Assembly: GCF_006345805.1 (NCBI RefSeq)
Contig: NW_021831284.1
Location: forward strand, 124,001-188,000
Source of the DNA: Octopus sinensis
Taxonomy: Eukaryota
Reading direction: 5' to 3'
Length of the DNA: 64,000 nt
A program made the translations under genes and the position numbers. Below the pieces are notes generated by a model. That model was not told the DNA's origin. It saw only the letters and a list, made by a program, of their open reading frames with translations, and searched no databases. This document shows positions 6,761 through 52,815 of the stretch, one piece after another. Numbering within the stretch: the first letter of the stretch is position 1; each line of letters opens with the position of its first letter.

Positions 6761-8675
6761 TTAGTAATAAGCATAAATCTCTTGTAATGTTTGTGGAGCC
6801 TTTGCATTCATGTGATTTGATTTAATAGTACAATATCCTTTTAAGTGCTTGTGGGTCTCACGCATAAAAATCCCTGAAGACCTGAAAATAAAAATACATT
6901 AAACTATACGTGAGATTTTCATCTAAAATTATATATATTTATAAAATAAAACCTTTAATTTTTCGACGGTATACAAATATTTCTAACAATGGAAGTCCAA
7001 CAAAAATAATTGTCGAAAAAAAGATCAGTAGAATGTACACGAGAGAAATAGATTTTTTTTCCTCTAAATTCATATACATTAAAAAAATTCACCAAAGTGC
7101 AAAAAAACTTTGATTGTATAATTATCTTCTAAAAATCCATCAGATAAAATGCAAGTGAGATTCATTGCTGGAGGATCATTTTTTGGAACATTGTTGGATT
7201 TCAAATAAAATAAAAAATTGCTTATATTTCCTTCAGATTTTATATTATAGGAGAGATCATTTTTTGTTGTATTTAGTACATTAAACAACCATTTGAAATT
7301 CATTTTTCTAATTGGGTCGACTTTTCCACCACATGAAATTTTATAATGATTTCTTCCGATCTTTTCAATTCGATTATAGTAAGGTAGGAATATAAATGGC
7401 GTTTCTATGATTTTGAGGTAAACCGTTTTAGCAGCTCTTGCAAATTTGTTGTAAACAAGACAACGAATGCTCATGGACTGAGTTACATTTATGATAGTAA
7501 ACGTTCTATTATCTTTAGACAAAAATGATATAAAATCAAGTGGATGTGTTCCTAAATCGAAATAGCAGTTGAATAGTACCGTATTCTACTGAATCCAAAT
7601 ACCACTTAATTTGGGGCTCAGGATATCCTCCTACCCAGGTGCACATAAAAGTCGCATTATCCCCTTTTGTTTTATTGAGTGAGACAAAATCATGGGAAAT
7701 AGAAGGTGATTCTAACATTAAAAAAATATATTACCGTAAAAAGAAAGTTTAAATTTTCTTTCAAGGTACGAATATTTATAATTCTTATACGAAGGAATGC
7801 AAATTAGTTCCCGGGTTGGATATGTCGCATTTACACCCACAAATAATCCGTCAGTGCCTATTAACGTTTTCCCCTCGTAATATGAAATCGTGTCATATAT
7901 TCTAAAATTAATATTATTTCACAAACTTTCCAAAAAATATACATGGATGAATTAATCCGGCTGTTTTAGAATTAATGAGTACATGATCTCCTCTTGAAAA
8001 TGTGTGTCCTCCCGAGGGTATGATATGTTTATTCATGGGCTTAACATTATGAAAATGAAAAATTTTTTTTTCATATTTGCCTTCACATATGAACTGACAA
8101 AATATATCCTCCTCGAGAAAATATTTAATGTAAAGATTGTTATTTTCCGTTTGCATTCTGTCATTTTTTGACTTGAACTTGATAATTTGTTTGAATCCAT
8201 TATTTGGGCAATATTTGTACCAGATGCAGTCAGTACTAACGCCTTTACTTTCTAAAGCTGCATAAGGGGACAAATAGTTGTAAAAAACTAGAATTATTCA
8301 CAATTTCGAAATACCAGTATATTTATTTAATGCCTCAACTTTAAATGGGAGAGATGTTTCCCGACCACATTTGTTTTCAACAGTGCAACTAAATATTCCT
8401 GATATGTTGTAGTCCTGATTGAATGTAAGATTTCTGCCATCTCTATAATAAGGTAAATCTTGAGTGAAGTCAATGAGAATCCCATCTTTGCTCCATCTAT
8501 AAATATATTATATAATTATCATTTACTTATATTCATGATCTGGTATACCTTCTATGGGACATTGTATGGTGTAGTTTAAGTAATTCAGAAAGTAAGTTGA
8601 GTCTGACATGTCCATAGTTGGAGGAAGACATTCAGCTATTATTTGAACAGATAATATCAATAGTATTAACAGCAT
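6761..8675 (-). CDS. Five-Ig-like-domain type I membrane protein, copy 1, long Tyr-motif tail
   Basis: Manual splicing gives an open frame: signal MLLILLILSVQIIAEC; D1 CPIE..WSKDG..FSCTVEN; D4 CTWVGGYPEPQIKW..CLVYN; D5 CGGKVDP..KW..CILSDG; TM ISLVYILLIFFSTIIFVGLPLL; tail ending LKGYCTIKSN..TLQEIYAYY*. Introns 23-30 nt, including a 13-nt microexon at 6910-6922. Confidence 0.85.
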
Positions 8676-9249
8676 TTCAATTTATTTGCGATCTAATTGC
8701 TACTTGTGTCATTGGTTTTTCTCTATTTATGGAAATATTTAAAATGTTTATAATTAGCGTTAATTATAAAAAATAAACTTTGCTGATAGTTTTTTCGTTT
8801 GTGTAAATCAATTTCTAGTTTTTCCTTATTTGGCTAAAAATTTATACAGCCAAACATGAACATAGTGAATTTCCCTTAATCACGGAACACAGTAGTTTTA
8901 ATTTCCTCTAAACTCAACTATAAAATATGATTTTTTAAACCGAAACAGATGTTGTTATTAACCAGTAGATTTTTTTAATTTTAATCTTATAAAAAAATTT
9001 TGAATTATTTAAGCTACGGTTTAGAAGAGTGATATGAACCTACATTTTTTTATATAAAAAATGCAGAACTCAAGACTCTGTATGCACATACAAAACTGTT
9101 TTTTGCGGCGACATTTATATCAATAACTCATGTTAGGCTGAACATAGCCTAAAACAATTTAGTCGAAATCGACTTTTTGATCAATAAAGAACATTATACA
9201 AACTTACTCGTGCAAAAGGATCAGAAGTGATTAGACATCGTTCTTTCTG

Positions 9250-9530
9250 CCAATCAAAAGGGATGATGGAAAATAAGCGACCAATCACGCCAATAATATC
9301 CACAAACCCGAATGATAAATATCTTACCGATTTGGTGAATCTAAGGTGTTATTAAGAAAGATATTATTGGGTATTTATTAGAAGTATTAAATTTTAGTTG
9401 CTGTTGACTCAATAGTTGCAACTTCAAAAAACTCAGAAGAAATATTATTTATCGAGAAAATCTTTTACACGATGGTCCTCCTCACATAGTTCATGCGGAT
9501 AATGGAAAATAGTTTAGGAACATAACTTCG
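9250..9530 (+). mobile_element. Degraded DDE integrase remnant (Ginger2/KRBA2-SCAND3-like)
   Basis: Reads KRPITPIISTNPNDKYLTDLVNL and GPPHIVHADNGK*FRN (integrase core D..DNG.EF pattern), with stops. Confidence 0.55.
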
Positions 9531-9665
9531 AATTTGCTTAACTTTCAAAATTCTAAAATGACCTTTCAGTTAAAGTTCAATATTTTAATCATATGCTTAA
9601 ATCTCTCAAAATCGATAATAGAAGAAATTACTCGCAGAAAAATTAAAGAAAACCAATATCAATGA

Positions 9666-10341
9666 TTATCTAATAACGGCAGGAACATCCACATCCATTT
9701 GGACATCTTGAGGCTTCAACTTTCCTGACTCCTCCATTTTCTTAGCCTGGATCCTCAGCCTCTTATCCTTCACATTCTTCCTCTTTGCATCAGCCAAATC
9801 ACTACTCATAAATAAAAACTGTCCACCTCATTTCTTTGAGCCTCTTTTGTTCTGACTGATTCTTATGAATATATTCCATAAGCGTTCTCTTACTCTTAAA
9901 TGTATTTCCCTTGCATTTCAGATATATTCGGTGATATCTGGATATTTAAAATAATTGGCAATACGTGTGACGGTCGATTTTTCCACTTTCCCTGTAGCTT
10001 TTCAGAAGACGACGTTGAATCCGAATTCTGTTGATCCACAGGCGTTTCTGAGGCATTCGAGCGTTAGCAGTGCCTCTCCTCTTTCCGATTCCAGTATGGC
10101 GACCCTTCCTTCTAGCTTCCAGTTTTATACGTATTCGGGCACGTGATTGAACTTTTACGGGCTTGCGGAAAATTATTCCGTTTTTTATCATTTTTCGAAC
10201 ACTTTGTCCTTGTGGGATATATTTTTAATATATACTTGAGTTGGCACTAGATATGTGCTGTGTCTCGTTTGAATCCAACCAAACACGTTTTTTCCCACAT
10301 TTAAGTATGTCAGCAGCTAATCTTCGTTGTAATCTCAGCAT
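9666..10341 (-). CDS. RPL19: 60S ribosomal protein L19 (eL19), 3 introns
   Basis: [57 protein letters not shown]; GT-AG introns of 25-27 nt. Confidence 0.97.
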
Positions 10342-10599
10342 TTCGTCTACTATTAAATTAAACACTACAAAACAAACAGCCACAAGAAAGGTGTACACGT
10401 GAAAATTTAAAATAATAATTAAAAAATAAAAGTTGTTAAGATTTTTTATGTTATAAATACATACAAATATTTAATTTGGTATATAAAGTTTTTTTCCTTT
10501 AGAACTTACAAATGTTGTTATTAATGCCACTTAAAGTTAGTACAAAAGGACAAAAAAAGCCGCTATTAAAACTAAAATTTTCGGATTTCAAAACCAGTT

Positions 10600-10760
10600 G
10601 AGTAATTGGCCAAAAGCTCTCAAAATCCTCTCAGAGATTGGTTTAATTACTTCGAGGAGTCACGACAGTTGCAAAACGAGCTGGCTTTTTCAACGGATAT
10701 CGCTCGCGATATTATGTGGAAACTGCTGTCCATCCGCACGGCGACTAATTCAAATTAATC
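10600..10760 (+). mobile_element. CRE-like 3' remnant
   Basis: WLFQRISLAILCGNC matches the CRE C-terminus WFRQRIGLAIVRGNA. Confidence 0.65.
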
Positions 10761-11329
10761 TTTATATTGCTATTCTTTACAAATTAACCATAGAAAAATT
10801 AGTATCTCATAAATATACTAACTCCGCGTACTAAAAGAAAGCTAGGAAAAGAGTAGACCACATAGCTCGGAGAATGTAAGTGATAGTGTGTTGGTGGACA
10901 GTTATCTCAAGCTAGCTGATTTACTTTAAGGGCCTGGATTTGATTCTTATAAGCAACCTGTGCAGAAAAGCTCGGATTGGACTGTCAGATATCAGAGTTA
11001 CTACGATCCCGCTAATCTGGGATTTTTCAATGGCAAGGCCAAACGTAACTAACCTGGACATCGATATTAACTTACGATTGGAGGTAGCGGTCCCAATCTC
11101 TATAATCTTCGTTATATGGTCGGGCTAATGTGTGAGCGTCATTCTCTGAATCTTCTACCTATCATCATTAACTATCCCGGACACCCGATACAGACCTAAT
11201 CTGGGAGATGGTGGCTCCAGAACGGTCATGCATCGTGAGCTCCTGCGTTAGAAGATCGGGCAGTTGATCGGTACAGAATCTGTAAATTCCCTAATTGACT
11301 AACGCTGGCACGAGACAGACAATCCGGCT

Positions 11330-11910
11330 GTGCAGACTTTGTCGACTTGAGGAGTTGGGTCAATGATGGGTCGACATCGAGGTGATTTAATCAGTGAGCT
11401 TGAAAGTTGTATTAAGAATGTGATCAGAACTAATAAAGATGCCATGTTTTTATTTGGTTTGGTGGTTCTCCTAAAAGAGAAAAGCAGCCACCAAATAAAT
11501 CAAATGTAACGAGTATTACTCTGTTTAATGCCTGTTCTCTTCGAAAGCGTGAGCAGAGCTGATAGCTCTTATCAGCACAGTTCAGATGAATGTATTTATC
11601 GTTAACAAAACGAAAATCAAGAGGTCTGAGAGTACAGTGCGACCTCGAATTTGGGAAAACCAAGTAGCTGGGAAACCCTCTTTTCGTGGAATACTGTAGT
11701 TTTGAGGAAATATTTTTTCTATTCCTATGAAATACGACGATTTTTAATGTAATAAAACCCATATTGGACATGTTTCTTCTGGCATGGAAGATGCCAATTG
11801 TTCGCATGATCCGGAAGAAAGGAAAACTAAGTTCTGATCCTGCAAATTACAGACCAAACAGCCTCATATGTTTTATCTCAAAAATCATGGAAAAATTGTC
11901 TTTAAAGCAC
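11330..11910 (+). mobile_element. Internally deleted APE-type LINE remnant (CR1/L2/Jockey-like)
   Basis: 11330-11640 is similar to 42500-42830 (APE start). It is followed by WKMPIVRMIRKKGKLSSDPANYRPNSLICFISKIMEK, the pre-RT motif. Confidence 0.65.
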
Positions 11911-11939
11911 TATCAACTTATTGAAGATAAGGAATATCT

Positions 11940-12340
11940 TTTGCATATTTTAGTGTATGATAAGAGGAAAAAAGAAATAAATTTAATCGAAGTGGGCATT
12001 ATTTCACAAAATCGTTTAAAGCAAGTTGAATTGGAGAAATTTTACAAATACGACATGCTTGCAAACGAACTGTCGGTTCCCTATGATGCATAAGTAGAGA
12101 TCATTCCAATTGTCTTAACATGTGAGATAGAGTTGTCTCAAAGTTCCTTAAAAGTCATATGGATAAGCTATCCATTGAAGACATTACGTCCAGTCGATTG
12201 TTCTAAAGAGGACGCTCGAGAGTATTCTCACTAAATACAGACATGGAATTAATGTAGACAACGAAGAGTAAGCCTCTATCACCAATCAACTTGCGGACGT
12301 GGCATGTCGCGAGGACACTCAGCTGAACAAAAAACAGAGT
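11940..12340 (+). mobile_element. R4/Dong-like RLE retrotransposon, 3' fragment
   Basis: ILVYDKRKKEINLIEVGIISQNRLKQVELEKFYKYDMLANEL; nucleotide similarity to the reverse complement of 33100-33500. Confidence 0.85.
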
Positions 12341-14476: not shown

Positions 14477-15412
14477 TTAATAAGTAATCTTTTGCCATGG
14501 TATATGCCCACAATCTCCGAGCAATCGTAAGGAAACAGTTCCAGAAGGGTTAATAGTCAATTCAGTAATAGAGGCATGAGCCAGCGACATCCTAGACCAA
14601 CCAGAAAGTGGCAATTGCAATGCCCTACAATAACAGAAAATATAAAGCACACCTGCATACAAAATAGCGGATAACATTTCCGTGACAGAATATTATGTCA
14701 ACTGAATCAGATTTTTGAGATGGTGGGGCGCGATAAAAAAATTTTTGAAAAGCGGAATCAATTCTGGGACCATCTTTTAAAAACTAAAGGAATAAGATCA
14801 AAATGTGTGTAAACACTGTCCTCCAATATGTTTAAATGCGTGTTCGCTGGTTCGGGAGGAAACGGAGCCCCTTCACGGAGAAGATCACAAAATTCGACTG
14901 AATCTTCTTCAAGTAAATTATTGGAGTTTTTGAAATAATTTTCACAAAATATTTTGGCTGTTTCTTGAGCTCTTATCATAGTTGAAGATGCAATTTTAGT
15001 TATGGGCATTTCAACCTCTAATAAACGTTCGGATGTATACTGAGCTTGTTCCCGACCTTTTATAAAAATAAATAAACTAAACCAAGTTCAGTCAAATAAT
15101 GCTCGTTATCAGATTTTCCTTGCTTATTAAACTGTCCATGGCGAATTAAAAAAATAGTTCTCGTGGCCGTAGGGATTATATCTTGATCTGAGTCGTTCAG
15201 AAAATGATATCTAATAAATAAAAGTTTTATGTTAATTATTACCTGTCCCAATTAAAATCCCATTTCGGACAATTTGTTGATAATAATTGTGGGGAAGCAG
15301 ATTTTACGACTAAATGGTTTTTTATTGAATTAAAAAATTTTTTAGATTCTTCGGGAACCACACAATAAGTGACAACCAAGCCTGCAGAAACTGCCAACAG
15401 ATTTCTCCACAT
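14477..15412 (-). CDS. PGAM5: Mitochondrial Ser/Thr/His phosphatase PGAM5
   Basis: N-terminal hydrophobic segment, WDFNWD motif, ATRTIFLIRHGQ, DLLREGAP, FCHGNVIRYFVCRALQLP, SLRLLGDCGHIP; short introns. Confidence 0.92.
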
Positions 15413-16003
15413 GCTATAAATATTGTTAATTGTTTTAAAAAAAAAATTATTATAATTATAATGTTTAAATATTTAAAGTCTTATTTTTATTCTAAAAATA
15501 AAATGATTACCGAACAAACAACCAAAAAACTCATCTAATTTAGTAAACTTCTCTATTTTCGACTCAAAAAAAAATTAACCAAAAAACCAATTATCTTAAT
15601 AAGTTAAACGTTGAATGTTTAATTTTGATTTTGAGGTTCGTCAATGATTGCATTGTTATCGCTTAATCTTATTGATAAATGATAGATTTATGATTGAATA
15701 TTTAATTAGCAGCAGAGGATAAGATGGAATAGCAATTCCCACGGAAGATGGCTGTTGATATTGATATGTGAATTGTATAAAATATTAAGAAATTATATCT
15801 GCCGAAGATAAGTCTTTCGATTTGGAATTATATAAATTATAAACTGCATTTAATTGAAATTTTAAAACTATCTAAGTAAATCTTTCAATCCAGTTCTAGA
15901 AATTTATATTCTTTTAGAATAAGAGTTTGTTGCCAATCCCTTTTTATTTCTTATCTTCATTACAAAGTCAGTCATCATATTTCCTTTTGCGTTTGCGGCC
16001 TGC

Positions 16004-16375: not shown

Positions 16376-18127
16376 TTAAAAAATCAACTTTTTTCTATTT
16401 AAATTTCTTCGACGATAAATGAAAAATCCGACCAGTGAAAGACATATAAGAATAAACCCCGACCAAACAATCACAATAATATTGATATTCGTGTTTTGCA
16501 CTAATTTATACTAAATAAAAAACTTACCAAACGAAACTGTAATTGTTTGAGTGACTTCTAAAAATCCATCTGATATTATGCAGGTGAGAGGCGCATCTGA
16601 TAAATAAGTTTTTGAGAAATTTTTTGAATTTTCATTAAAGAAGAATTTGCTGATATTTTTTTCAGACGTTATAAAAAAGACTGAATCATCCACATTGTGT
16701 CGTACTGGCGTTCCATTGTATAACCAGTTTATTTTCATTTCTCTGAGTGGATCGACAGTTCCTTTACACACGATTCCGATTTGGTTCAACTCCTCCACAC
16801 GGATACGATTGAAATGTGACATGAATATTGTTGGCTTTTCTATAATCTTGACGTAGACTGTTTTTGCAGCTTGTGAAAATGCATTATAAACAAAACATCG
16901 AACACTCATGGACCGGGAAGTATTGATTATAGTAAACGTTTTATTGTCTTCAGATAAAAACGATTTAAATTCAATTTCAGTTGTACCTGAGTGTAATTAA
17001 TTGCTTAAATACCATATTCCACGGAATTTAAATACCACTTTATGGCTGGTTCTGGATACCCTTCTTTAGAAGAACATACAAATGTTGCGTTTTCTCCTGT
17101 TGTTACATTTAATGAACGAAATGAATCAGAAATAGAAGGAGGTTCTACAAATTTTTAATGATATTTAACCATAAATAGAAAGTGTAAAATTTTCTCCAGA
17201 ATGAAACAATTCCGTTTCATGGCTTAAAGGGACACATAATATTGTTCTGGTTGGCTGTTTCACATTTGTATTCACAGGTAAGTAGTTAGTTCCTACTAAG
17301 GTCTCATTTTCATAATATAAAATTTGGTCGTATAGACTAAAATATATATTTATGAACAAACCTCCCATAAAATAAACATGGCTGGATTTTCTCCACCGAC
17401 GAATTGTACTTGATTTTTACGTTTTCTCCTCTTGTAAAGACGTGGACCAAATAAAAAGAGAAACCTTTTTTAAATTAATAAACAAGAAAACTGATTTCTG
17501 GAGGCTGAATATAGAAAGTTTTGTTCTCATATTTTCCTTCGCAAACATAAGAAAATTTTGAATCATCCTTAACAAAGTATTTTATATACAAATCGTTATT
17601 CTCCACTATTAATCTGTCCGTTATTGACGTAGAATTAATAATTGACTTTTTTCCATCGTATATACTATTTCTATACCACGTGCAGTCCGTGCTAATGCCT
17701 TCACTCGTTAATATAGTATTAAGAAAATTTTGTGCTGAGACAACTAAAAAAATAAATACAATAAATACAATTATTTTTAATCAAAGTCTCCACTTTGAAT
17801 GAAAGAGATGTTTCTCGACCATATTTGTTTTCCACTGAGCAGGTAAAAATTTCTGACTTGTTGTAGTCTTTGTCAAATATGAGATTTCTGCCATCTCTAT
17901 TATAAAGCAATTCTTCTGCGAAATCAATGGGGACACCATCTTTAATCCATCTGTATATATTATATAAATATTATGCACTTGTATTCGTATACGGAACTTG
18001 CCTCTATTGGACATTCTATAGTGTGGTTTAAATAATTCAAAAATTTTGTCTCATCTGTCATCTCCATGGTTGGAGGAAAATTGGCAGTAAATATTTGTGG
18101 AAATAAAACAAGCAAATTAAACAGCAT
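16376..18127 (-). CDS. Five-Ig-like-domain type I membrane protein, copy 2, short tail
   Basis: Open spliced frame from MLFNLLVLFPQIFTA through five domains homologous to copy 1 (D1 about 59/87 identical by hand). TM IIVIVWSGFILICLSLVGFFIY, then RRRNLNRKKLIF*. An additional 3' splice is possible. Confidence 0.85.
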
Positions 18128-22928: not shown

Positions 22929-25179
22929 ATGTGTGACAAAGATAAAATTCAACCAAATCATAATGAAGATGAGTTTGTTACTTCAGATGACGAAGTATTA
23001 AATTTTATAGGCATTTAAACCGTCTAGGATGTAATTACAACAATTGGCAATGTCCCTAACGAATGGTACGAGCATCTCGACCACATTGGCTACTCTGTCG
23101 ACTCAAAAAAACTAATCAAGCCAAAATCAAGTGACCAAATAGACAATTTACTTGAAAAGATAGAAAATCCAAATTACTGGTAATAAACATTTATATAATA
23201 CAGGCGGACCGTTACCGACGATGTTACTAAACAGCAAGTAATATTAGACGACAGTGATCTTCGACTCATTCGTAGGATAACCTCTGGTAATGAAGTGCCG
23301 TGTGGGTTTGACCCATATAAAGTAGTTTTGATTATTTATTTTAATTTCAGCTTCTGAATCCTCCTAAATCTGTTTGCATTCATCCATTGACAAATGGTCA
23401 ACGTTCAAAAAAGAGTTTCCAACCTAGAGAGCTTCTCAAGGCAATAGATGTAATCAAATTTAAATTTCAAATAAAGGCGGAGAAAAAACTAAAAAAAATA
23501 AAACCTACAAATCACGTGAATGACACAAAAATAAAACTTTTATACGACTTGTGGCAAACTGTATTGAATGTTATTGGCATATAAATAGGAGGGTACTTCA
23601 ATCAGAGATCGGAAAGATCATATCCCGCCTCCTAAAATGGTTATGCCAGGAAACGAAGAGTCATATAATCCACCTGCAGAATATCTTTTCACGCCGGAAG
23701 AAGTAATTTAAATAATATAAATCCTTAGGAGGCAGATCTTCCTCCTGAAACATTCCGTCCTCGCAAGCATAGCAGTCTTCGTTCTATTGAGGCATATGAC
23801 AACTTTATTAAGGAAAGATTCGACAGATTACTTGATTTATACTTATGTCCACGACAAAAGAGAGTTAAGGTAAATATGCATAGCCTATTGATAAACTCAG
23901 GCTAATTATACGGTCAGAGATTTGCTTCCTCCAATGCCGAATATCAAGGATTTGGAGCCATTTCCAAGCAAGTTGTCTATGGTTGTTTATAATCACATTT
24001 TTATGTGTTTAGCAATTTAAAGGACACGAGAAATGTGTTAAATGCTTGGCAATTGACTCGTCGGGTTTATTTTTGGTGTCTGGTTAGCTTTAAGGGTATT
24101 TTTATCATAATTTAGGCTCCGATGACTGTAGTGTTAGGGTTTGGTCACTCACGACGTCGAGATGTCTTCAAACTATTACATTTGAGACTGAATGTGTTGG
24201 TGTTGCTTTTATTGAACACGAAAGGGGCTCATTCTTGGCTGTTTTATTGTATTTTTATTTGATTTTGTAATTTTCTATAGAAAACAGACAATCGAATTTG
24301 TTTTGCCCTCATTTCTAAATCCTATGGACACAGAAAAGTCAAAAGAATTGTTTTCGTCTTTAGATTTGAATGGAGAATATGATTACTTCAAATGGAATCG
24401 ACAAAATTCGAACTCTGTCCTGTCAATAAGCTCGTTTGCCGAGTTCTCGCAGTTTACTTGGCACAAAAAATGCAATTATTTTGCCACTATTCAGCCCCAA
24501 CAGGACTCTAGAAGTCTGGCTGTCCATCAACTCACCAAAGCAAATTCTCAGGTTATAATTTCACGTTTCTTAAAATTAGTTTCTCTTTCGACGTCCAAAG
24601 GGACATTTACAAGCTGTTAAATTCCACCCAATCAAGCCATGGCTGTTTGTGACTGTAAATTTTGTAATTCCAAGCATAAATAGACTAAGCGTCATGTCTT
24701 GTTGTATAATCTTTTAAAACAGTCTCTGGTCAAGAGATTTGATTGCTCTTCTCAATGGATTTCATGTTTTGCTGTCCATCCTAGTGGACATGACTTTGTA
24801 GTGGGGAGTTATGACTGTCGTCTTCACTGGTTTGACTCACAGTTGAGCAATAAGCCATATAAAACGTTATCGTATGATTGTTTAATTCTTATTTTTTATA
24901 GACATCATGAAAAACCTGTTTTGTCTGTGGACATGCATAGGAAGTATCCTCTCTTTGCTAGCACTTCAGCGGATAGGTCAGTGCTTATTTTCCATGGTCG
25001 TGTGTATGAGTATATGCTAGTTCCTAAAATTTTATAGTGATTTGTTGAAAAATGCAGAGATTATTCCACTAAAGATATTGCGGGGGCATCTTGATAAAGT
25101 CACGGCCTGTTTGTTCCATCCAGAACAGCCATGGATTTTTTCGTGTGGGGCAGATACACTGATTAATTTATATACTTGA
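22929..25179 (+). CDS. BOP1: Ribosome biogenesis protein BOP1/Erb1 (WD40), many short introns
   Basis: TIGNVPNEWYEHLDHIGY, ENPNYWRTV, PKMVMPGNEESYNPPAEYL, FIKERFDRLLDLYLCPR, and WD repeats ending FSCGADTLINLYT*. Confidence 0.95.
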
Positions 25180-28429: not shown

Positions 28430-28858
28430 TGTACTACGTCCTCATCACTCAAATCCGACGTAAATTTGGCGGATTGAAAGAGGACCGAAAATTTTCTGGA
28501 GCTTGTGAACTCTGAAATGTATCCAAATTGCTTATTCCATCTAAAATCTCACGCCAATGGGGATGTGATGATATCTCCAGCAAAGCTAAAGCGAAAGCGG
28601 TCATACTTACATTGGAAAAGCAGTCTCGCTTGTTTCGGCAGCGCACTAGACCTGAAAAGGGTGCGTGGCTTAATGCCATCACTTCCTTACACTCTGGAAC
28701 TCTTCTCGTAATGACTGTGTAAGGATTGGCGTAGAAATGCGTTTTGGACTTAATGTTTGTTGGAAGGTCAATGCCGATGTGGTAGTGAACTCGATACCAA
28801 AGGATTACATCCCCTTTCATGCAAAAGGAGTGCTGGGCGTGTTCCCAGACACACCTGA
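28430..28858 (+). mobile_element. Older CRE-like fragment, second copy of the CRE-Ig module
   Basis: Closely matches 5281-5579, with frameshifts; reads GAWLNAITSLHSGTLL and CRCGSELDTKGLHPLSCKRSAGR. Confidence 0.8.
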
Positions 28859-28918
28859 AACGTTGTAATTCTTGTATAATATAAATTTTCTGCCATCTTT
28901 ATGATATTGAAAAATTTG
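28850..28918 (-). pseudogene. Fragment of Ig-family domain-1 exon fused to the CRE fragment
   Basis: Minus strand reads QYHKDGRKFILYKNYNVSGV, with the same junction as at 5571. Confidence 0.6.
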
Positions 28919-34935: not shown

Positions 34936-34939
34936 TAGT

Positions 34940-36215: not shown

Positions 36216-36283
36216 AAGAAGTTAATAATAAACTAATATATTATTCTACTAAATTGTGTTATTAACTAAGTGGTGTGGTGGCC

Positions 36284-36803
36284 ATGATATCACAAAAAAG
36301 AGTAATGAAGGAGACCAAATTACTGTTGGAGCAGAAGGAGGAAGGAATACAAATAGAACAAGACGAAAACAACTCCCGCCTTTTCTACGTGTGCATGGAT
36401 GGCCCAGTAGACGTAAATTTATATGTGAGTGATGTTAGAGTCCATACGAGGGCGGAAAGTTCAAATTGGAATTATTTCTGCCCGAAGACTACCCGATGGT
36501 GCCCCCGAAAGTTCGGTTCCTGACTAGCATTTACCACCCGAACATTGACAAACTGGGGAGGATATGTCTGGACGTAATAAAAGGTTAGTGATTGGAGTGA
36601 AGACAGACAAATGGTCGCCAGCAATGCAGATCTGGGCTGTGCTGATCGCCATCCAGTCCCTCCTGAGCAGTCCCAACCCAAATGACCCATTAGACCCTTC
36701 TATCGCGGAACATTGGCTGGCGAACCCTGAGGGGGCCATTTCTAAGGGTGTAATGAGTATATCATGTTTAGCCAAGGAATGGACGAAGATATTCGCAGAT
36801 TAG
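36284..36803 (+). CDS. UBE2N: Ubiquitin-conjugating enzyme E2 N (Ubc13), 3 introns
   Basis: [57 protein letters not shown] after removing 26-, 23- and 24-nt introns. Confidence 0.93.
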
Positions 36804-36808
36804 TAATA

Positions 36809-38011
36809 TTAGACATTATTTCGTTTCCTTCTATTCCTTTCTTGGTAGTGCTCACTAGGCACGTGACATCCCTCCAGTACTTGTTGGACACGACTCGACT
36901 GATGATTGTAGCCGTGGTGACCTCACTCCCCGAGTCGATTTCCCTCACAATCCCCCTCTTGTACGCAAACTAGGGGTCCCTCGGAACAAAAGATACCTTA
37001 TAGGGGTCTCCTGTCATGGACTTTGTCTTGCCATGGCACACCACCCCGATCTAAGAATAGCTGGGAAGGAGACGTTAAGATAGTCCAAGAAATCATCCCC
37101 CAATTGAAATGGAGCCTCCATAATAACGTCGTCGACATTCTTGTTGGCGAGAAGAACCATCATCCTTTCAAAGAAGGTACATATTGGGTAAGACCCCGTG
37201 GAATTGTATATTCGCTGGTCAGAGTATAGCCCCACAATGAGATAGTCTCCCAACTGTTTGGCCTTTTCAAGGAAAGACACGACCCCCACATCTGCGAGTC
37301 CTCAATAAAGTATACGATATATATCAAAGGCCCCGTCGACATAGACCACCTTCGACTGGGGAGTTCTTGGTCGTGCCAGGGCCAGGAATTGAGTGATAAC
37401 CTTGGCGGAGGGATACAAGCAACTGTCAAGAGTAGGGACCGGATTGGTCAGAATTCTACACATGTGGTTGAATTGTGACCTGTCGATAATGTCAGTCGAC
37501 GAAACTCCGATGGTCCGTGGATACTCTCTGTGGGTTACCGTGTGGAATACAAATATCGGCCACTGGCCTTTATAAACCGATAGCAGTCCTCGTTGTTCGA
37601 GTCCCGAGTGATATCGTCTATCATACTACACTCAAAATACCCGCATGAGCACAAAAGTCACATTTTAGCTCGTCCAAAGTATTCATTTGCACTACATACG
37701 GACAGTCCCCCACCACCTCACAAATCACTCACTTAATCCACCTCTTTCGGCCATCGGAATGACTCCAGGATTCGTATTCTCTCCGACTGACTAAACACTG
37801 GCATTCCCTTCACTTTCCCAATCTCCTCTACAATATTCACATTCCTTACCGTCCGAGTGCACCCCCACCACCAAGTCGTGGCCAAAACAGCTCGCCTACA
37901 TTACTCACTCTCTCTACCTTGAACAGAGCATTCGCGTGCCCGTAGTGCACCAAATCAAAACTACTTATCGCCAACATAAAACACTCACCACCCATCCAAG
38001 TACACTCGCAT
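36809..38011 (-). CDS. PCYT2: Ethanolamine-phosphate cytidylyltransferase (two CT domains), 11 introns
   Basis: MRVYLDGCFDLVHYGHANAL, LVVGVHSDEEI, CDFCAHADDIT, RTIGVSSTDII, YVDGAFDIYHVGVVSFLEKAK, DPYK..RGIVREIDSGS; introns 22-28 nt. Confidence 0.93.
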
Positions 38012-38509: not shown

Positions 38510-38690
38510 AACTTGTCCTTCAATGAGCTATCTCGCCGTCATATCTTTTCCCCGATCGCAGTGGAGACGTCGGGAATCCTCGGTCCGAGAACTAAAAAAT
38601 TCCTTATTAAACTGGGGACCTGGCAAGCAGAAGGAGAAACGATCATCGAGAACGGACATGGCTTCTTGTTGGCGGGAAGAACCATCATCC
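38510..38690 (+). mobile_element. CRE-like 3' remnant
   Basis: LSRRHIFSPIAVETSGILGPRTKKFLIKLG. Confidence 0.7.
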
Positions 38691-39604
38691 TCTCAAAGAA
38701 GGTGCATATTTGATAGGAACCTGTGGAATTATAAATAGGCTGGTCAGAAAATTTTTCCTTTCAACATTTTTACATCTAATTATATCATCCACAATCTGAA
38801 ATATAATTGATGCATTCGGCGAAGAATTTAATTCGATAAGATAGGTAATTTGAAGATCCGTTATTTTTCATTAAGAATATTTACAAATTTTTCCTTACCG
38901 GGCTCAGTCTCATCCAAAAATCGTTTCATTGATTAACAATCCGATTATCTGATTGACACCTCTTTAGTCCAAATTTTGACATTACTTCGATATTTTAATT
39001 CTTCGATATTTTAATTGACCGAGTTTCATATTAGGGTTACAAATATATGTAAAACAAAACAATACTTCCCATTAACGTTTTATCTTGACTAACTTGTGCA
39101 GTAAATAGATATTTAAATCAACTGGCAACATTAAAAACACACAAAGCATATGGTGGGTTAGTTTACTTACAATAGACTGCAACAATATCGTAAAGTCAAA
39201 ATAGATATAAAAATGTCAGAATGGTATAGTTGAGAAGTAAATTTGTAATTTTTCTTTTTTTATATTTAAAAATATCTTTGTTTTAACACTCGAAAAGGAT
39301 TTTCACTATGTAGAGATTATGTTTTATTGCATCGGATTTTAAATTGGAAAATCGGATTTAAGTAAATGGTTCAGACTCCAAAAAGAATTTATTTTTGATT
39401 GGAAATTGAGTAATTTTTTGTTTACAAATAGCCTTCCACTCTAAAGACAACTTCCAGGAACAAGAAAAAACTAAAAGTAGTAATTATTTATCAGTTTTTT
39501 AATAAATCATTTATTTTTTTGATTATTAAAACTATTTAAGACATTATATTTGGATTTATTGAATTTAATTCCTTATTATTTAATAACGAGAACTAGGAAA
39601 GAAA

Positions 39605-41640
39605 TTAGTGTAAGTTATAATTAAATAAATCCTTTTTGTTTTTGCGTTTATTTTGACGACACGAGTTTGTTGCGAAATATAGCACGATAATAATTATCAG
39701 CACTGGCAAAAAACCCCATAGCATTCTGAAAAAAACCGTAATTTTTGATGGCACTAAATTATAGCCATTTACCCAACTTACCAAATTTCAATGAAACGGT
39801 GATTGTGTGTCTTGCTTCTAGAATCCCATCTGAAACGATGCACGTGAGATTGGTAGGGGGTATGTCAATTTCATTTTTGATGTCTTATTAAATAAAAAAC
39901 TGCTTCCGCCTTTCTTGAATATTATAGAGTAGACGTAGTTTTTTCTGCTGATTTGTGCCGGTTTCCCGCCAAATAACCAGCTTATTTTCATTTTCCTGAG
40001 TGTATCAACAGTTCCATCACATGTAATTTCATGAAGATTTAGCTGAGTCATTTCTGTAAAATTTAAATATGGCATAAATATTTTCGGCCTTTCTATAGTT
40101 TTGAGGTAAACTGTTTTAGCAGTTTGTGAATATTCGTTGTGAACAAGGCAACGAACACTCATAGATCGGCTCGCATTGATTATATTAAGTGTAGTGTTTT
40201 CCATAGACAAATAAGACTTAAAATCCAGTTTTGTTGTGCCTAAATATTGTTAGAAGCATGAAGTACCATATTCCACTGAATCCAAATACCATGTTATTGT
40301 GGGTACTGGGTACCCTGATTTCCAGAAACAGCGGAATACTGCATTATCTCCTTGAGTTACATTTAGCGAGACCAATAAATCGGAAATAGAAGGGGGTTCT
40401 AATAATGTTTAAAAGAAATTAAACCGTAAATTGAAACAGTGAATTTATATTCGATTGGATCATGTAAGATAGTATTATTTGTATCCAAAATGGTATTGTT
40501 TGTGTCAAAAGTCATGCTATTCGCATCCAGAGTGATATTGTTTGCAACAAGAATGGTGTTATTGACATCCACAATCGTGTTATTCGTATCCAGGATAGTA
40601 TTATTTGTATCCAGGATAGTATTATTTGTATCCAGAATGGTGTTAGTCCAATTCTGAATGTTATTATTTGCTTCCAGAATGGTATTGTCGGCATCGAGAA
40701 TGGTATTATTTGTATCGAAAATTTCTTTACTGATGCAGAGAAAAGTCCGTGTTGGCATTTTTATTTTCCCGTTAAAATCAAAGTGATTCGATTCTAATAA
40801 TGTTGTTTTTCCTTCTTTTACTTCTGAATAGACAATTTCGTCGAGTTTTCTAAAATTTTCATTCCAGTAAAAACCTCCCAAAAAACAGACAGGGTTTAAT
40901 ATTTTCGGACATTCCATACTTAATTATGACATTTTGTCCCCTTGTAAAAACATGTGTCAGATCAAACGGAGTTGCTTAAATATTTGAAACCGAACAAACT
41001 TGTAACGTTATTTTCAAAGTGAAATTCTTTACTTTCATATTTTCCCTCGCAAATAAAAGAACAGTTTATATCTTCTTCGATGAAGTATCTTATGTATAAA
41101 TCGTTATTTTCGACTATAAGTCTATCAGTGTTCAATGAGGAAGTAATTATTGATTTGGTTCCGTTTTTTTCACAATATTTATACCATGAGCACTCGGTGC
41201 TAACTCCCTCACTTCTGAGTATTGCGTAAGGTTTTTCATAAGAGGAAAAGACTAAAATTATTTTGAATTTAATAAATACCCGTGTTTTTAATTAGAGGCT
41301 CCACTTTGAATGGAAGAGATATTTCTCGACCATGTTTGTTTTCAACAGCGCAACTAAAAATCTCTGATATAGAGTAAATCTTGTTGAATATGAGATTTCG
41401 ACCATTACTTCTATAAGGTAAATTCTGTGTAAAATCAATGGGAACTCCTCCTTTAAACCATCTATAAATATATTATGTAATTATCATGTACTTGTATTCA
41501 TCGCCTGGATTAGCTTTTATGGGACATTGTATAACGTAGCTTAACTGATTCAGATAGTAAGTTGTGTCAGACATATGCATAGTTGGAGGAAAAAAAGCAG
41601 TCGCAGTATGAAACAAAAATATCAGGATATTCAATAGCAT
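39605..41640 (-). CDS. Five-Ig-like-domain type I membrane protein, copy 3, with heptad insertion and short tail; one 1-nt homopolymer frameshift in D5
   Basis: Signal MLLNILIFLFHTATA, homologous D1-D5, TM MLWGFLPVLIIIIVLYFA, tail CRQNKRKNKKDLFNYNLH*. The frame in D5 is restored by one extra base in the 5-T run near 39875. Confidence 0.82.
40465..40716 (-). repeat. 12 tandem 21-bp coding repeats (consensus DTNNTIL)
   Basis: ORF 40399-40917 residues 68-151: DTNNTIL DADNTIL EANNNIQ NWTNTIL DTNNTIL DTNNTIL DTNNTIV DVNNTIL VANNITL DANSMTF DTNNTIL DTNNTIL. Confidence 0.95.
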
Positions 41641-44651: not shown

Positions 44652-44799
44652 ATCTCTCTCCTTTTAGAAAAAAAGTTTTCTACTAATTTCTCACTCTTCT
44701 CGTTCTCTATCTCTCCGCCGAACAAAGTTGTTACAGTAAATATTTTCCTATTTGCTAACTCTGTTAGTTGCCATTCCTTTATTTTCAGAACATTTTGTT
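44652..44799. repeat. Left copy of target duplication flanking the CRE element (segment A 44652-44748, segment B 44750-44799)
   Basis: B is identical to 47950-47999; A is the reverse complement of 47855-47951 with a few differences. Confidence 0.9.
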
Positions 44800-47700: not shown

Positions 47701-47854
47701 GCATATCGTGTTCTCTCTTTTTGGAATGATGTTCGGAATGATAGTTTCACTTAACAACATGCATTGTTCTTCATTGTAGTTGTCCGTAAGCATCAAAGTT
47801 TCTTGTTTATTCACAGCAAAATTCAACCCCACATCAGCCATCACGTAATTCATT
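44800..47854 (-). mobile_element. Near full-length CRE-clade retrotransposon (PHD finger, RT, Zn knuckle, RLE), several frameshifts
   Basis: CSSCELSNK..CSSCGEFFHLSCV..WDCRRC; FKKNDGGVRPIAV; GVQQGDPLGPLLF; WYLDDATIGG; RRPDGVTLFPYSGGKPLVWD; 3' AATAAA and a short A-run at 44798-44804. Confidence 0.93.
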
Positions 47855-47999
47855 GGAAAATATTTACTGTAACAACTTTGTTCAGCGGAGAGATAGAGAA
47901 CGAGGAGAGGAGAAATTAGTAGAAAACTTTTTTTTCTAAAAGGAGAGAGATTTGCTAACTCTGTTAGTTGCCATTCCTTTATTTTCAGAACATTTTGTT
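47855..47999. repeat. Right copy of target duplication (inverted A followed by direct B)
   Basis: 47855-47951 is the reverse complement of 44652-44748; 47950-47999 equals 44750-44799. Confidence 0.9.
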
Positions 48000-48499
48000 G
48001 ATTTACATAAAAATATTCTATTATTTGCTCAATTCTGTTATTCGCAGATTTTTAAAATAAAATTTCTTTTTGATAATAATTGTTGTTATGCTTGGGCCGT
48101 GTAGAAAAAGATTCCTCATTCCAAATTAAGCCTCTCCTTATTGGAGTGTCTTAATTATATGGTAGCTGCGTATATCAACAAGAATCTATCTAACTGATTG
48201 GTGCAGATTTCGACAATAGTCTATGCTGGAAAAGTGTGCTAAATATTGAGTATGAAAAATTCTGAAAAGTCTAATTGGAGTATTGATATGAAGGAAAAAT
48301 TGAGCAGTGGAGAGCAAGGTTGGGCCATATCGAAGTTCTTTGTAAAATCTCTCACGGCTGAAAAAAAGCCACTTGTTTGAATGCATTATTTCTTGTTGGA
48401 TATAAAAGAAAAGAAAAAGCAAATAATAACTTCCTTAATTAATGAAAAACCCATGTTGAATAAAAAGAGGTTATCTACGCACGAGAAAGGAAAGGATTC

Positions 48500-49000
48500 T
48501 GACTAGATAATCAAACATTTGAGCTTAATCGGAAAGCTTTTTACAAATGATTGAAGGGAGGCGAGACTAAAAATTTTATTCAAGTGGATAGTGAAGAGTT
48601 TGGAACATATTGGCAGAATATGTGGCGAAAAAAACAGTTGAGTGTTCAGAATATGGAGATTGAAAACAGGATGATTGGAATAGAGGACGTAACAGTCTAC
48701 GTTTTGAAAAGTTTATTTCAGGAGATCGTCAAATATTTGCTAAGTGGAAGAACCCAGGCTCCGATGGTGTGTATAATTTCTTTCTGAAGTTCACATTACT
48801 TCATGAGTCAATTTTCGGACAAATAATTAATGTCATAGAAGGAAAACTACTCCAGGAGATTGTTTCTAAACAGGGGTGACACATTTTATTCCAAAGTGTG
48901 AAAACCCGGTGTGAACTAAGGTAGTCCAAGAAATCATCTCAAGCAATGGTGTCCCCAAAAGAGTTACGGCCTATAACATGTATGGGGTCTCTCTATGAAC
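48500..49000 (+). mobile_element. Degraded R4/Dong-like pre-RT fragment
   Basis: FGTYWQNMW and KWKNPGSDGVYNFFLK-like motifs across shifted frames. Confidence 0.55.
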
Positions 49001-49621
49001 TAATGATAAAATGTTTAAATACTAAGCTTGGAGAGTTTGTGGAATTTTTCTCTGAAAACAATGAAGCTCTGCTTTAATGAACAGAGTTAAACAAGGAAAA
49101 TGGAACAGACTCCACGCTGCATAAATCTACGGCAAAAAGAATTTGATTTAATCGCAGAAATTTATACAATATGCATTTTCTCAACTCAGTGAGCGAACAG
49201 AGGCATACAATCTACTATAAAGAAAACCCTTGAGAGGATGATTGTCTTTTATAGAAAGAAAGTTGAATTAAAATTATTAAAGAAATGTTTATTTTATTTG
49301 AGTTGTTATTTCTGAATCTGTTTGCTACATAAACAGTGTTGTGAGTGAAACTTATTTAGCCTGTCATTTCGTATTATACGTACTCCGATTGTTAATGTTT
49401 AGAAAACTCCAATATGTGAGAAAGATGTACAGCCCAAGATACCCACGAAATCTCTTTTGTCAGGATTGTGTTAAACCTTAGAAATTTTAAGGGGTTCCAC
49501 CATGGCCTTCATAATGACTTCGGGAAAAGTTTATGAATCATCTTGTCTTTGACAGGAAAATTATCGCATTCTAAATAACTATTCTTTTTAAGTTTTTTTA
49601 ATTTATTTAAAAATTGTATAT

Positions 49622-51582
49622 TCAGTAGTACTCATAGATCTCTTGTAATGTTAGTGGACCTTTGCTTCGATTCATATTTGATTTGACGTAACAATATCCT
49701 TTTAATCGGTTTTGATTCTTGCGAATAAAGTCTGTCAAGGGTCTGAAAATAAAAATACATTAAACTATACTTGGAATTTTTGCCTAAAATTATGTATATT
49801 TATAAAATAAAACCTGTAATTTTTTGACGATATACAAATTTTTTTAATAAAAAGATTTCAATAAAAATAATTGCCGACAGAACAATCAACAAAATGTTCA
49901 CATGAGACACCGGGATTTTTTTTCTCTCTATGTTCATATCAATTAATCAATCTTACCAAAAAGAAGAGAAACTGTAACTGAATGATTTTTTTCCAGAAAT
50001 CCATCTGATATGATACACGTGAGAATAATCGATGGAGAATCAATTATTGGTTTATTGTAGGATGTTAGGTTAAATATGAAACTACTCCTATTTTCGGCAG
50101 CTATGATATAATAGAGGAAATCATTTTTTATGTGTTTCATTTGCTTTCCATTGAGCAACCAATTTATTTTTATTTTTCGCACCGGGTCAACTGTTCCATC
50201 ACAAGTAATTTTATATATATTTGACGTAATCATATCAATTCGGTACGAATAAGGCATATTTATTATTGGTTCTTTAATGATCTTAAGATAAACTGTTTTT
50301 GCAGATTTTGCAAAAGCATTGGAAACGAGGCATTTAACACTCATAGACCGAGTTGGATTGATAACTTTCAATGTGGTTTTATCTGTTGATAAAGTTGAAT
50401 TAAAGTCAAGAATGTTTGTTCCTGAAACTAGTATCAGCAAATAATAATACCATATTCTACTGAATCCAAATACCAGGTTATTGTAGGTTTTGGATATCCT
50501 GCTTTTAAAAAACAAAAAAAAGTGGCGTTATCCTTTTCTGTTACATTTACCGATTTTAAGGAATCGGAAATTAGAGGTGATTCTAAAATTTTTTAATAAA
50601 ATTTAACCATAAATTGAAATTGTGAAATATTCTCTTTTATTAAAAATTTCTTCTCCGTAGAATGAAGGAACACAGGAAAATTCTGTATTCATCAGCTCTT
50701 CATTTGCATTCAAATTCATTCCGTCAATGTCTACTAATATATCTTCTTTGTAATATAAAATTGAGTCATACAGACTAAAATTAATATTTATGAATAAACT
50801 TTCCAAAAAATAAACAAGGATGAATTTTCTCAACGGAATTAAGCTCGATTGTTATGTTTTGACCTCTAGGAAAAGTATGAACCAGGAATAGGTTAAGGCC
50901 TTTTTGTCAAAGAACAAAAAAACCTGTTATTTCTTGAACAAAAGAAAACTTTTTTTCTTCATAATCTCCCTGGCAGACATAGAAACAAGATGAGTCATCT
51001 CTGTGGAAGTATTTTATGTATAAATCGTTATTCTCAACGATCAATCTGTCGTTTATCGACTCAAAAATTATCAATGTATTTTCTTCTTTTTCTGGACATG
51101 TTTTATACCACAAGCATTTTGTACTAACGCCTTCAGTCCTAAGTACAGTAAAATAACGATCTTGAAGGTCGTAGACTAGAAAAAGCATGCTTAAACATTA
51201 CTATTTTCTTTTATTAATGGTTCAACTTTTATTGGAAGAGATGTTTCTCTGCCACATTCATTTTCAGCAGTACAGCTGAACACTCCTGCGACTTTAAAGT
51301 TTTCGTTAAATATCAATTTTCTGCCATCTTGATGATAAGGAAGATTTCCAGTAAAGTTAATGGGGATGCCCGCTTTAGCCCAGCTATATTTAAGTTTAGA
51401 TAAAAATACGTGTATCCATCAACTGGATTCATTTCTATAGGACATTCTATGACGTATTTCAAATAATTCAGCATATATGTTGTTTCAGACATGTCCATTA
51501 TAGGGGGAAAACAAGTATTAATTGCTGGACCAATTAATAAATGCATTATTAGAAATATATGGACCTGATCTAGAAAATCCAT
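49622..51582 (-). CDS. Five-Ig-like-domain type I membrane protein, copy 4, long Tyr-motif tail
   Basis: Open spliced frame: D1 CPIE..WAKAG..FSCTAEN, D4 CFLKAGYPKPTITW..CLVSN, D5 CDGTVDP..CIISDG, TM VNILLIVLSAIIFIEIFLL, tail ending LKGYCYVKSN..TLQEIYEYY*. 13-nt microexon at 49771-49783. Start codon could be the first or second Met. Confidence 0.85.
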
Positions 51583-51789
51583 ATAATAAAAACTATTTCC
51601 ACCACTTTTGTTCCTTTATATTCTTAAAATATTATAAAATCAATAATAGGAAATAAAAATGCTAATTTCCACTATCTTGCTTTTATTTAATAAAATTTTG
51701 ATTTTATTTTTTTAAATAAAGTAAATTAAATTTTTCTTTAAATTCGTCCCCTGTTTTGTAGATTAATTAATTAATTTAATGAATTAAAA

Positions 51790-52010
51790 GGCCTGAATCT
51801 TTACTGGGCGAGAGGCTGACGCGATAGAGAAAGAGGTCGAGCGTACTATCGCGAGGGGTATCCGCTCAGAAAACCATCTCAATTCGCGGGCGTCACCTGT
51901 GAGTGTCGACATACGAGACCCGATCTCCTGAACAAACCGATTGCCTTTCCACCCAAAGTACCAAACGTCTCAATTGCGAATGGGAGGAATTGGTACTTTT
52001 CCACTTTCGC
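51790..52010 (-). mobile_element. CRE-like 3' remnant
   Basis: KYQFLPFAIETFGTLG..QEIGSR..ELRWFSERIPLAIVR across a frameshift. Confidence 0.75.
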
Positions 52011-52429
52011 ATTTTTTACACTCGGCAGTTGTGGCAATTGATCCGCGAACATCAACAGGTCAATTATTTCCGAATAAATTATTTTTTTATTAATTTAAAA
52101 ATATTAATTTTTATTAGTTCTACCAAATTGACACAAATATAATAATTAAATAAAATTAAATTATTCAGTTAAAAAAAAAACAAAAAACAAAAAAAACAAA
52201 TATAATTTTCGCCAACGAGACTCTTTGGAAAAGATGACGAGTCTCGTTGGGATCCTTGTTTCGTCTGGCAATCTTCGACCCCAGCCGACGAAGGAAAGAA
52301 AGCGATTTTGGGCCGATGACCCCGGAACTTGTTTCGTCTGGCAATCTTTGCTTTCGCGAATCATCAGATAAAAATGATTTAAAATCAAATATAATTGTTT
52401 GACAATTTAAAATTGACTAGAACCTTCAT

Positions 52430-52815
52430 TTCTTCTACGGTTTACAAATATTTTTAAAAATACAATTTCAACAAAAATAATTTTTCAAAAACGACCAACA
52501 GAATATATATGGCGATATTTTCAATTTGTTTTCCTCTAAATTCATATACCTTTAAAATTTCATCAAACTACATAAAACAGTGATCGTATACTTAATTTCT
52601 AAAATCCATCAAATAAAATACAAGTAAAATTCTTTTTTGAAGTATCAATTAATAAAGATGTCAAATTAAATAAAAAATTTTTATCAAATAATCACTCGAA
52701 TTTAATTTTCCGCACTGGTCGACTCTTCCAATCATTTCAATAATTCTGTTTTTATTTATTCCAATCATTTCAATAAGGCAAGCGTATTTCTATGTTCTTA
52801 AATTAAATCTTTAAC
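52430..52815 (-). pseudogene. Degraded 3' fragment of the Ig family (D5 and TM exons)
   Basis: Shares CCTCTAAATTCATATAC (intron/TM boundary) and TTCTAAAATCCATCA.ATAAAAT.CAAGT with copy 1; deletions and stops present. Confidence 0.65.

Follow-up and report, generated by a model that had tools for sequence, protein, structure and literature searches.

Within a 64-kb stretch of DNA deposited under Octopus sinensis (contig NW_021831284.1, positions 124,001 to 188,000; the whole stretch is hereafter the window), we demonstrate the architecture of a gene family encoding five immunoglobulin (Ig)-like domains, its Ig membership, the purifying selection acting on it and its lack of close relatives. 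On balance, we consider it probable that these genes encode a lineage-restricted Ig superfamily (IgSF) group of type I membrane glycoproteins, adhesion/recognition receptors of the Ig cell adhesion molecule (IgCAM) type, kept under purifying selection in a parasite with ultra-short introns. An earlier reading of the letters alone (the sequence-only reading) had described four near-complete genes and three fragments and had proposed a variable receptor or antigen family; the evidence favours a conventional adhesion/recognition family over a hypervariable receptor or antigen, and the family would be a previously undescribed, lineage-restricted member of the IgSF. The window represents one haplotype, and all family comparisons below are between paralogs within it.

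Gene models were built by dynamic programming and by paralog-guided curation from a four-way nucleotide alignment of the four full-length paralogous genes (c1 to c4), which all lie on the minus strand and are loosely clustered in the window. In the curated models c1, c2 and c4 are intact, and c3 has a frame defect. The c1 gene (6761-8675) consists of nine exons (8527-8675, 8315-8496, 7927-8287, 7735-7901, 7580-7711, 7093-7551, 6953-7063, 6910-6922 and 6761-6881) and encodes 564 amino acids (aa), in the order signal peptide, domains D1 to D5, transmembrane (TM) segment (approximately aa 486-515) and a 49-aa tail with the end TLQEIYAYY. The c4 gene (49622-51582; ten exons, 572 aa) likewise has a long tail, ending TLQEIYEYY, and c2 (16376-18127; eight exons, 522 aa), from which the tail exons are absent, has a short one, YRRRNLNRKKLIF followed by a stop. 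The layout of c3 (39605-41640) is that of the other copies, with a D5 exon (39782-40239) of 458 nt. The number, strand and start and stop coordinates of the genes agree to the base with those of the sequence-only reading, and the nearly constant exon layout it described is also seen in our models: from 5' to 3' the exons measure 149 nt (173 in c4), 182, 252 plus 100 or 103, 167, 132 and 459, 458 or 465 nt, followed by the TM exon, after which a 13-nt microexon and a 121-nt tail exon occur only in c1 and c4. In all copies the introns are 22-30 nt long and run from GT to AG. The D2/D3 intron is present in c2, c3 and c4 (17465-17491, 40975-40999 and 50900-50923; 24-27 nt) and is lacking in c1, where the 252-nt and 100/103-nt exons are fused into one of 361 nt (7927-8287); by this comparison, c1 has lost the intron and about 18 nt with it, and its reading frame continues across the former junction.

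That these are genes and not chance open frames follows from the Pfam matches that cross spliced junctions, from frames of 522-572 codons in DNA of about 30% GC and from a proportion of nonsynonymous differences (pN) about half that of synonymous ones (pS). A cross-paralog tblastn map of frame support gave no discrimination, as off-frames matched too, and no shared promoter motif beyond AT-richness was found upstream of the four ATGs. The sequence-only reading had all four near-complete genes keeping their frames and cysteines; this holds for c1, c2 and c4, whereas c3 is frameshifted in D5 by a 7-nt gap relative to c4 near 39873/39874, adjoining an A5 run, and the shift leads to a premature stop at 39818-39820. 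To judge from the letters, this defect could be either a pseudogenising mutation or a homopolymer assembly error. The same copy carries an in-frame tandem repeat in its second D3 exon (40472-40716, minus strand; 11.7 copies of a 21-nt unit), each unit of which encodes D-T-N-N-T-I-L and thereby one N-glycosylation sequon; the repeat inserts approximately 86 aa after the second cysteine of D3 and ahead of its final strand.

Each protein contains five Cys-pair domains of about 90 aa. The Pfam families Ig_3, I-set and Ig_2 match D1 and D4 of c1, c2 and c4 with E values of 1e-10 to 1e-17 (51-63 bits for Ig_3 with a cut-off of 30, 37-46 for I-set with a cut-off of 23.7, and 41 for Ig_2 with a cut-off of 27), and these matches run across predicted splice junctions. 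In the PDB the family profile matched Robo1 (5e-10), contactins, titin, CEA, NCAM2, MuSK and SYG-1/2, which, by the regions aligned, are generic I-set adhesion proteins and not co-linear with the family. Isolated D2, D3 and D5 yielded only sub-threshold Pfam hints at E <= 10, to Ig_5 for D2 of c4 and to Ig_3 for D5 of c2, and the structures of single-exon translations were modelled with AlphaFold from four-sequence alignments. The model of the D2 exon is a seven-strand beta domain with a predicted local distance difference test score (pLDDT) of 82-91, and each of its 50 best-scoring Foldseek matches is an Ig domain, among them those of AMIGO-1, DSCAM and IL-1RAcP. For the D4b-D5 exon, the modelled D5 is all-beta and of moderate quality, with a pLDDT of about 70; its top Foldseek matches, with few exceptions, have the Ig fold, the best being TrkA D5 at 4.9e-4. 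These models support the view that D2 and D5 are Ig-like by predicted fold. For D3 we infer an Ig-like domain from its length, from two invariant cysteines spaced at 39 residues and from hhalign, which aligns it weakly with D4 (E 0.12); hhalign matches among the domain profiles are weak even between D1 and D4 (E 0.09), and the best is that of D4 with D5 (0.008). Profile and Foldseek comparisons of the kind suggested earlier as a check thus recover D1 and D4 by sequence and D2 and D5 by predicted fold, with no match for D3, so that the original description of five Ig-like domains, with D2 and D3 atypical, needs two amendments: D3 is included by inference, and D5 also is invisible to Pfam.

The cysteine framework is well kept. 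The pairs C39/C87, C131/C178, C226/C265 and C310/C361 are invariant in c1 to c4, and in D5 (C404/C464) the first cysteine is invariant and its partner is present wherever the region is readable. The Trp typical of strand C in Ig domains follows the first Cys invariantly in D1, D4 and D5; in D2 the arrangement is an atypical C-x-W, and Trp is absent from D3. An extra pair in D2 (C137/C174) is complete in c1, c3 and c4 and wholly absent from c2, and an extra pair in D1 (C16/C93) is found only in c1 and c4; because these cysteines are gained or lost as pairs, which fits real disulfides, the pattern suggests additional disulfide bonds.

The proteins are predicted to have type I membrane topology, with a cleavable signal peptide, an ectodomain and one TM segment. 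Each intact copy shows a single hydropathy peak, at about aa 484-523, that marks the TM segment, and the basic residues behind it would act as a stop-transfer signal. The N-terminus is hydrophobic above the hydropathy cut-off only in c1 and, in c2 to c4, as judged by eye; with this qualification, the signal peptide, TM segment and tail previously assigned to each copy are predicted by our models too. The number of N-x-S/T sequons ranges from 9 to 17 per copy. The tails are of two kinds. Those of c1 and c4 are long (49-50 aa) and share a YxxPhi pattern, GYC[TY][IV] (GYCTI and GYCYV), and a common C-terminus, TLQEIY[A/E]YY; the shared motifs and an omega (dN/dS ratio) of 0.35 indicate that the tail frame has been kept between them. 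The short tails, that of c2 and, if its frame is restored, that of c3, have neither YxxPhi nor TLQEIY-x-YY; in c2 just 13 residues follow the TM segment, which contains no charged residue. Regular-expression scans of the tails for immunoreceptor tyrosine-based inhibitory, switch and activation motifs (ITIM, ITSM and ITAM) found none, and YxxPhi was the only pattern present.

Octopuses are hosts of dicyemids, and the DNA comes probably from an ultra-short-intron parasite of this group. Among animals, introns of 22-30 nt have been reported only from dicyemids and myxobolid myxozoans (PMC13644364; PMC6543705). The GC content of the window, 34.9%, is closer to that of Dicyema japonicum (36.7%), whose genome is reported to consist of 49% repeats and to hold many copies of long interspersed nuclear elements (LINEs) (PMC6736024), than to that of Henneguya (29.1%; PMC13644364), and the window is LINE-rich like D. 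japonicum. It alternates between AT-rich genic DNA (about 30% GC) and GC-rich retroelement blocks. Among named proteins, the closest to a 404-aa LINE open reading frame (ORF) at 4062-5276 on the minus strand are several from Octopus sinensis (46-55% identity, E values as low as 1e-108), and this likeness could reflect either a LINE clade shared among lophotrochozoans or transfer from host to parasite. A ciliate origin, with which introns of 25 nt and AT-richness would also agree, was considered and rejected, given the standard code with TAA and TGA stops and the neighbouring retroelement ORFs of the non-long-terminal-repeat (non-LTR) type, whose best named relatives are animal.

Overall amino-acid identity between paralogs is 49-52%, and by domain it is 52-67% in D1, 59-68% in D4, 42-63% in D2, 34-49% in D3 and 35-49% in D5; between c1 and c2 we computed 65% for D1 and 37% for D3, in good agreement with the hand estimates of about 68% for D1 and about 40% for the second D3 exon. 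Selection was estimated pairwise for each domain by the Nei-Gojobori method. With pS about 0.6, pN about 0.3 and dS above 1, and hence saturated, omega is 0.20-0.33 over the whole gene, 0.13-0.26 in D1 and D4 and approximately 0.3-0.6 in D3 and D5, and it stays below 1 in every domain and every pair (0.13-0.64). These estimates show old duplicates under purifying selection. No mosaic or recombination signal was detected: counts of parsimony-informative sites that support each of the three topologies stay at about the same level over the length of the gene. In polymorphic recognition receptors it is typically the membrane-distal domain that is variable and not conserved, whereas in this family D1, which lies farthest from the membrane, ranks with the best conserved.

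A variable recognition or variant-antigen family, serving self/non-self discrimination, host interaction or immune evasion, with diversifying selection on paralogs and alleles, is in our judgement unlikely. It would accommodate paralogs about 50% identical that nevertheless keep their frames and cysteines, the higher omega of D3 and D5 (about 0.3-0.6), the turnover of copies (a frameshifted copy, a half copy and fragments borne by a transposable element (TE)), the glycan-rich repeat insertion in c3 and the occurrence of an orphan family in a parasite. It is opposed by omega below 1 throughout with a conserved D1, by the age of the duplicates, whose saturated dS is accompanied by no sign of recent birth or of diversification driven by conversion, by the lack of mosaic topology and by the presence of only five loci in 64 kb, with housekeeping genes between them. 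The hallmarks of parasite variant surface antigens, diversifying selection or hypervariable exposed regions together with frequent recombination among many copies, were not found among the paralogs of the window, and a dN/dS comparison by domain, akin to the per-site one proposed as a check, returned purifying and not diversifying selection, so the variable character claimed by the sequence-only reading is not supported by these paralogs. In addition, a published survey recorded an Ig domain in only 6 dicyemid sequences (PMC6543705), which speaks against a large expansion should the source be a dicyemid.

The search for relatives points to lineage restriction. Neither c1 nor the four-sequence family profile matched anything at E <= 0.01 among 5.8 billion protein clusters (including NCBI and UniRef) in searches with a word prefilter, and a scan of metagenome contigs gave no relative of the family. 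An exhaustive search with the D2 profile against 1.84 billion representatives returned two matches, a VSTCCSWY-repeat ORF and a bacterial D-N-x-Y-x-N-x-F-V-R-D-L repeat protein, both of which were rejected as repeat-driven artefacts. Self-matches of the family are missing from the protein collections too, and the source genome is seemingly absent there. Literature searches turned up no account of a dicyemid Ig family, and the family's status as undescribed, with no close relative in the collections searched, is upheld.

Four known groups invite comparison. Bilaterian I-set IgCAMs (Robo, contactin/neurofascin, NCAM, titin-type and CEA proteins) resemble the family as type I membrane glycoproteins with tandem Ig domains, its D1 and D4 match I-set, Ig_3 and Ig_2, and the family profile matches these proteins in the PDB with E values of 5e-10 to 1e-4; the family differs in having no FN3 domains and in that sequence alone identifies just two of the five domains, the matches are at domain level and non-co-linear, and no orthologue was found. 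Kirre/Neph/SYG-1 proteins and ALCAM/MCAM/BCAM have five Ig domains, a single TM segment and a tail of short or medium length that carries tyrosine or C-terminal motifs, and the C-terminus of the Kirre family is PDZ-binding. The family shares with them its five predicted Ig-like domains, the single TM segment and a tail of this kind, and SYG-1 and SYG-2 are among its PDB matches (E about 1e-4). These matches cover only profile positions 249-333 (D3b-D4) and involve a different domain pair, with SYG-1 residues 86-163 aligned to profile positions 259-333 (E 1e-4), so that co-linear homology across five domains was not found, and the family ends in TLQEIY-x-YY (...EIY[A/E]YY) and not in a PDZ-binding end. 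The Alr allorecognition proteins of Hydractinia are clustered, divergent Ig-like type I membrane proteins, some of whose domains are missed by standard profiles, and their N-terminal domain, which controls fusion or rejection, is extremely polymorphic between alleles. The present family resembles them in being a cluster of divergent Ig-like type I membrane proteins with profile-invisible domains in a simple invertebrate, but its D1 is conserved and not variable, it has no ITIM or ITAM, and Hydractinia is a cnidarian whereas the source here is probably a dicyemid and hence spiralian; as the earlier reading had allowed, no homology to Alr was seen with c1 or the family profile among the 5.8 billion clusters, in word-prefiltered searches in which Alr was not directly aligned. 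Paired inhibitory/activating receptors of the KIR/LILR type, which have ITIMs in the long tails and a charged TM residue in the short-tailed members, likewise mix long, tyrosine-bearing tails (here c1 and c4) with short ones (here c2 and c3) in one cluster, but the family has no fit to ITIM, ITSM or ITAM, the TM segment of c2 is uncharged and no homology was detected.

An unusual pattern of conservation was observed in the tails of c1 and c4. In c1 the tail module (6882-6952, minus strand) comprises intron 8 (I8, 6923-6952), the 13-nt microexon (6910-6922) and intron 9 (I9, 6882-6909), and in c4 (49743-49813, minus strand) the corresponding parts lie at 49784-49813, 49771-49783 and 49743-49770. 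Between the two copies I8 is identical at 29 of 30 positions and I9 at all 28 (57/58 together), whereas the microexon is identical at only 7 of 13 and differs at the other 6, and the exons around it have about 50% protein identity (52% over TM segment and tail). Most introns are near the shuffled level, with a mean identity of 0.65 versus 0.56 for shuffles, and the I8 and I9 sequences were found nowhere else in the window. By this comparison, intron sequence is kept far more strongly than the surrounding exons in the c1 and c4 tail, in two genes whose synonymous sites are otherwise saturated. Gene conversion was rejected as the source of the identity, since a conversion tract would have homogenised the microexon as well, which differs at six positions. 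The simplest idea is that the introns are under strong constraint as splicing signals that would control the tail. Retention of I8 would end the c1 and c4 proteins in ...GFIL-stop, and skipping of the microexon would cause a frameshift; alternatively, a single intron of 79/82 nt ending at a downstream AG would keep the tail frame too. The module of I8, microexon and I9 is, in its own right, a possible splicing switch for the cytoplasmic tail.

These tails also bear on another reading of the family, as endocytic or uptake receptors on absorptive outer cells, whose long-tailed forms would be internalised through YxxPhi and whose short-tailed or intron-retaining forms would stay at the surface. 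GYCTI and GYCYV fit YxxPhi and have been kept in c1 and c4 despite tails only about 50% identical, the conserved introns around the tail microexon would permit a choice of tail, and for D. japonicum the authors of the genome paper suggest that its clusters of expanded genes help it to take up nutrients by way of membrane ruffles (PMC6736024). We nevertheless rate this reading as unlikely: YxxPhi is short and often arises by chance, the proteins contain no ligand-binding module other than Ig, c2 is intact and constrained although it has no such tail, and the assignment of the organism is indirect. A bolder proposal combines recognition with the tail switch, making the family the main recognition system of a parasite of about 30 cells, polymorphic between individuals or strains and used in kin or germline recognition or in binding the host renal epithelium, with splicing of the 13-nt microexon switching between a long-tailed (signalling or endocytic) and a tail-less output; we regard this as speculative and quite improbable.

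A degenerate 3' half copy (c5, 52418-52917, minus strand), comprising part of D4, D5 and the TM exon, has 74-76% nucleotide identity to c1 with deletions and stops in every frame; immediately past it, a LINE on the plus strand occupies 53.1-55.4 kb. Two further fragments resemble D1 exon 2, one of 85 nt at 5570-5652 (minus strand; 72% identical to c4) and a second copy of roughly 58 nt at 28849-28906 (minus strand; the pair range over 58-85 nt). Both lie within one 372-nt repeat (5273-5638 and 28549-28917, 93% identical), which runs on into GC-rich LINE sequence and whose 5273-5638 copy is fused to the LINE ORF. The repeat looks like a copied, TE-associated chimera of a piece of the Ig-gene D1 exon and a LINE, and, with 93% nucleotide identity between its copies versus 66-72% between the gene duplicates, it is by this measure much younger than the gene duplications. 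Since the two fragments share one repeat, they are not two independent gene relics; of the three fragments reported earlier (5571, 28850 and 52430), the last is a real degenerate half copy and the other two are copies of a LINE-associated repeat. That the whole family is a decaying remnant of an ancestral IgCAM, its members now pseudogenes that lack expression or function, is very unlikely. In its favour are the frameshift of c3, the degeneration of the half copy c5, the fragments lodged in LINE sequence and the failure to find a conserved upstream motif; against it, three frames of 522-572 codons have been kept in AT-rich DNA after synonymous saturation, pN is about half pS, and the splice sites and cysteines are all retained.

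The copies are dispersed and co-oriented, as had been stated, with ordinary genes and several retroelements between them on the window. An M48 (STE24-like) protease lies at 58-1500 on the plus strand, ribosomal protein L19 (RPL19) at 9949-10470 and a His_Phos_1 (PGAM-like) protein at 14480-15472 on the minus strand, a WD40 protein at 24216-25034 on the plus strand and a cyclophilin at 58518-59039 on the minus strand. GC-rich (about 45-48%) non-LTR retroelement ORFs occur at 4062-5276 (minus strand) and in blocks at about 28.5-31.7 kb and 44.9-47.4 kb. Another GC-rich block (about 46% GC), with segments at approximately 36266-36800 (plus strand), 37017-37301 (minus) and 38542-38760 (minus), contains pieces of a ubiquitin-conjugating enzyme, two similar cytidylyltransferase-like fragments (...YNSTGSY.ICTFFERMMVL...) and adjoining retroelement tails; the enzyme pieces, with a composition unlike that of the AT-rich native genes, could represent pseudogenes or fragments that were captured. 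A search of all 64 kb against Rfam gave no family that reached its gathering score.

Several points weigh against the preferred reading of a conventional adhesion/recognition family. Its function is a prediction from sequence and modelled fold, and the assignment to a dicyemid is indirect. The AlphaFold models derive from four-sequence, single-exon alignments, and their Foldseek E values are weak (5e-4 to 0.1). D3 gave no detectable Ig signal, with no match in Pfam and none for its profile in the PDB at E <= 10. Saturated dS makes omega imprecise, and with four old paralogs episodic or site-specific positive selection is possible. Finally, because the searches were prefiltered and the exhaustive one used D2 only, the family could be a distant orthologue of a conserved IgCAM, for instance of a Kirre/Neph-like protein.

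Under the adhesion/recognition reading, old local duplications would have produced a loose, co-oriented cluster, between whose copies housekeeping genes and LINE insertions now lie, and the family would be both maintained, in its three intact copies, and eroded, in one frameshifted and one half copy. Its proteins would act as adhesion or recognition receptors on the surface of the parasite's cells. The conserved, canonical D1 and D4 may have constrained binding or architectural roles, and D2, D3 and D5 may be more freely evolving spacer or modulatory domains. The long-tailed members may couple to sorting, endocytic or phosphotyrosine machinery, and the short-tailed members may serve adhesion only.

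The family currently makes no long-standing question testable, but it offers examples of three kinds: Ig domains that have drifted beyond sequence recognition, of which D2 and D5 are recognisable only from the predicted fold while D3 escapes recognition altogether; the loss of an intron from one paralog in a family whose introns measure 22-30 nt; and intron conservation far above that of the surrounding exons. The conserved introns and microexon, together with the possible dichotomy of long and short tails, are the features most worth attention. Most of the toolkit for adhesion and guidance is gone in dicyemids and other extremely reduced parasites. Should the source be a dicyemid, this cluster would make up a large part of the IgSF complement of the whole animal, and it would then be an obvious candidate for mediating adhesion between the parasite's cells or to the kidney epithelium of its host.

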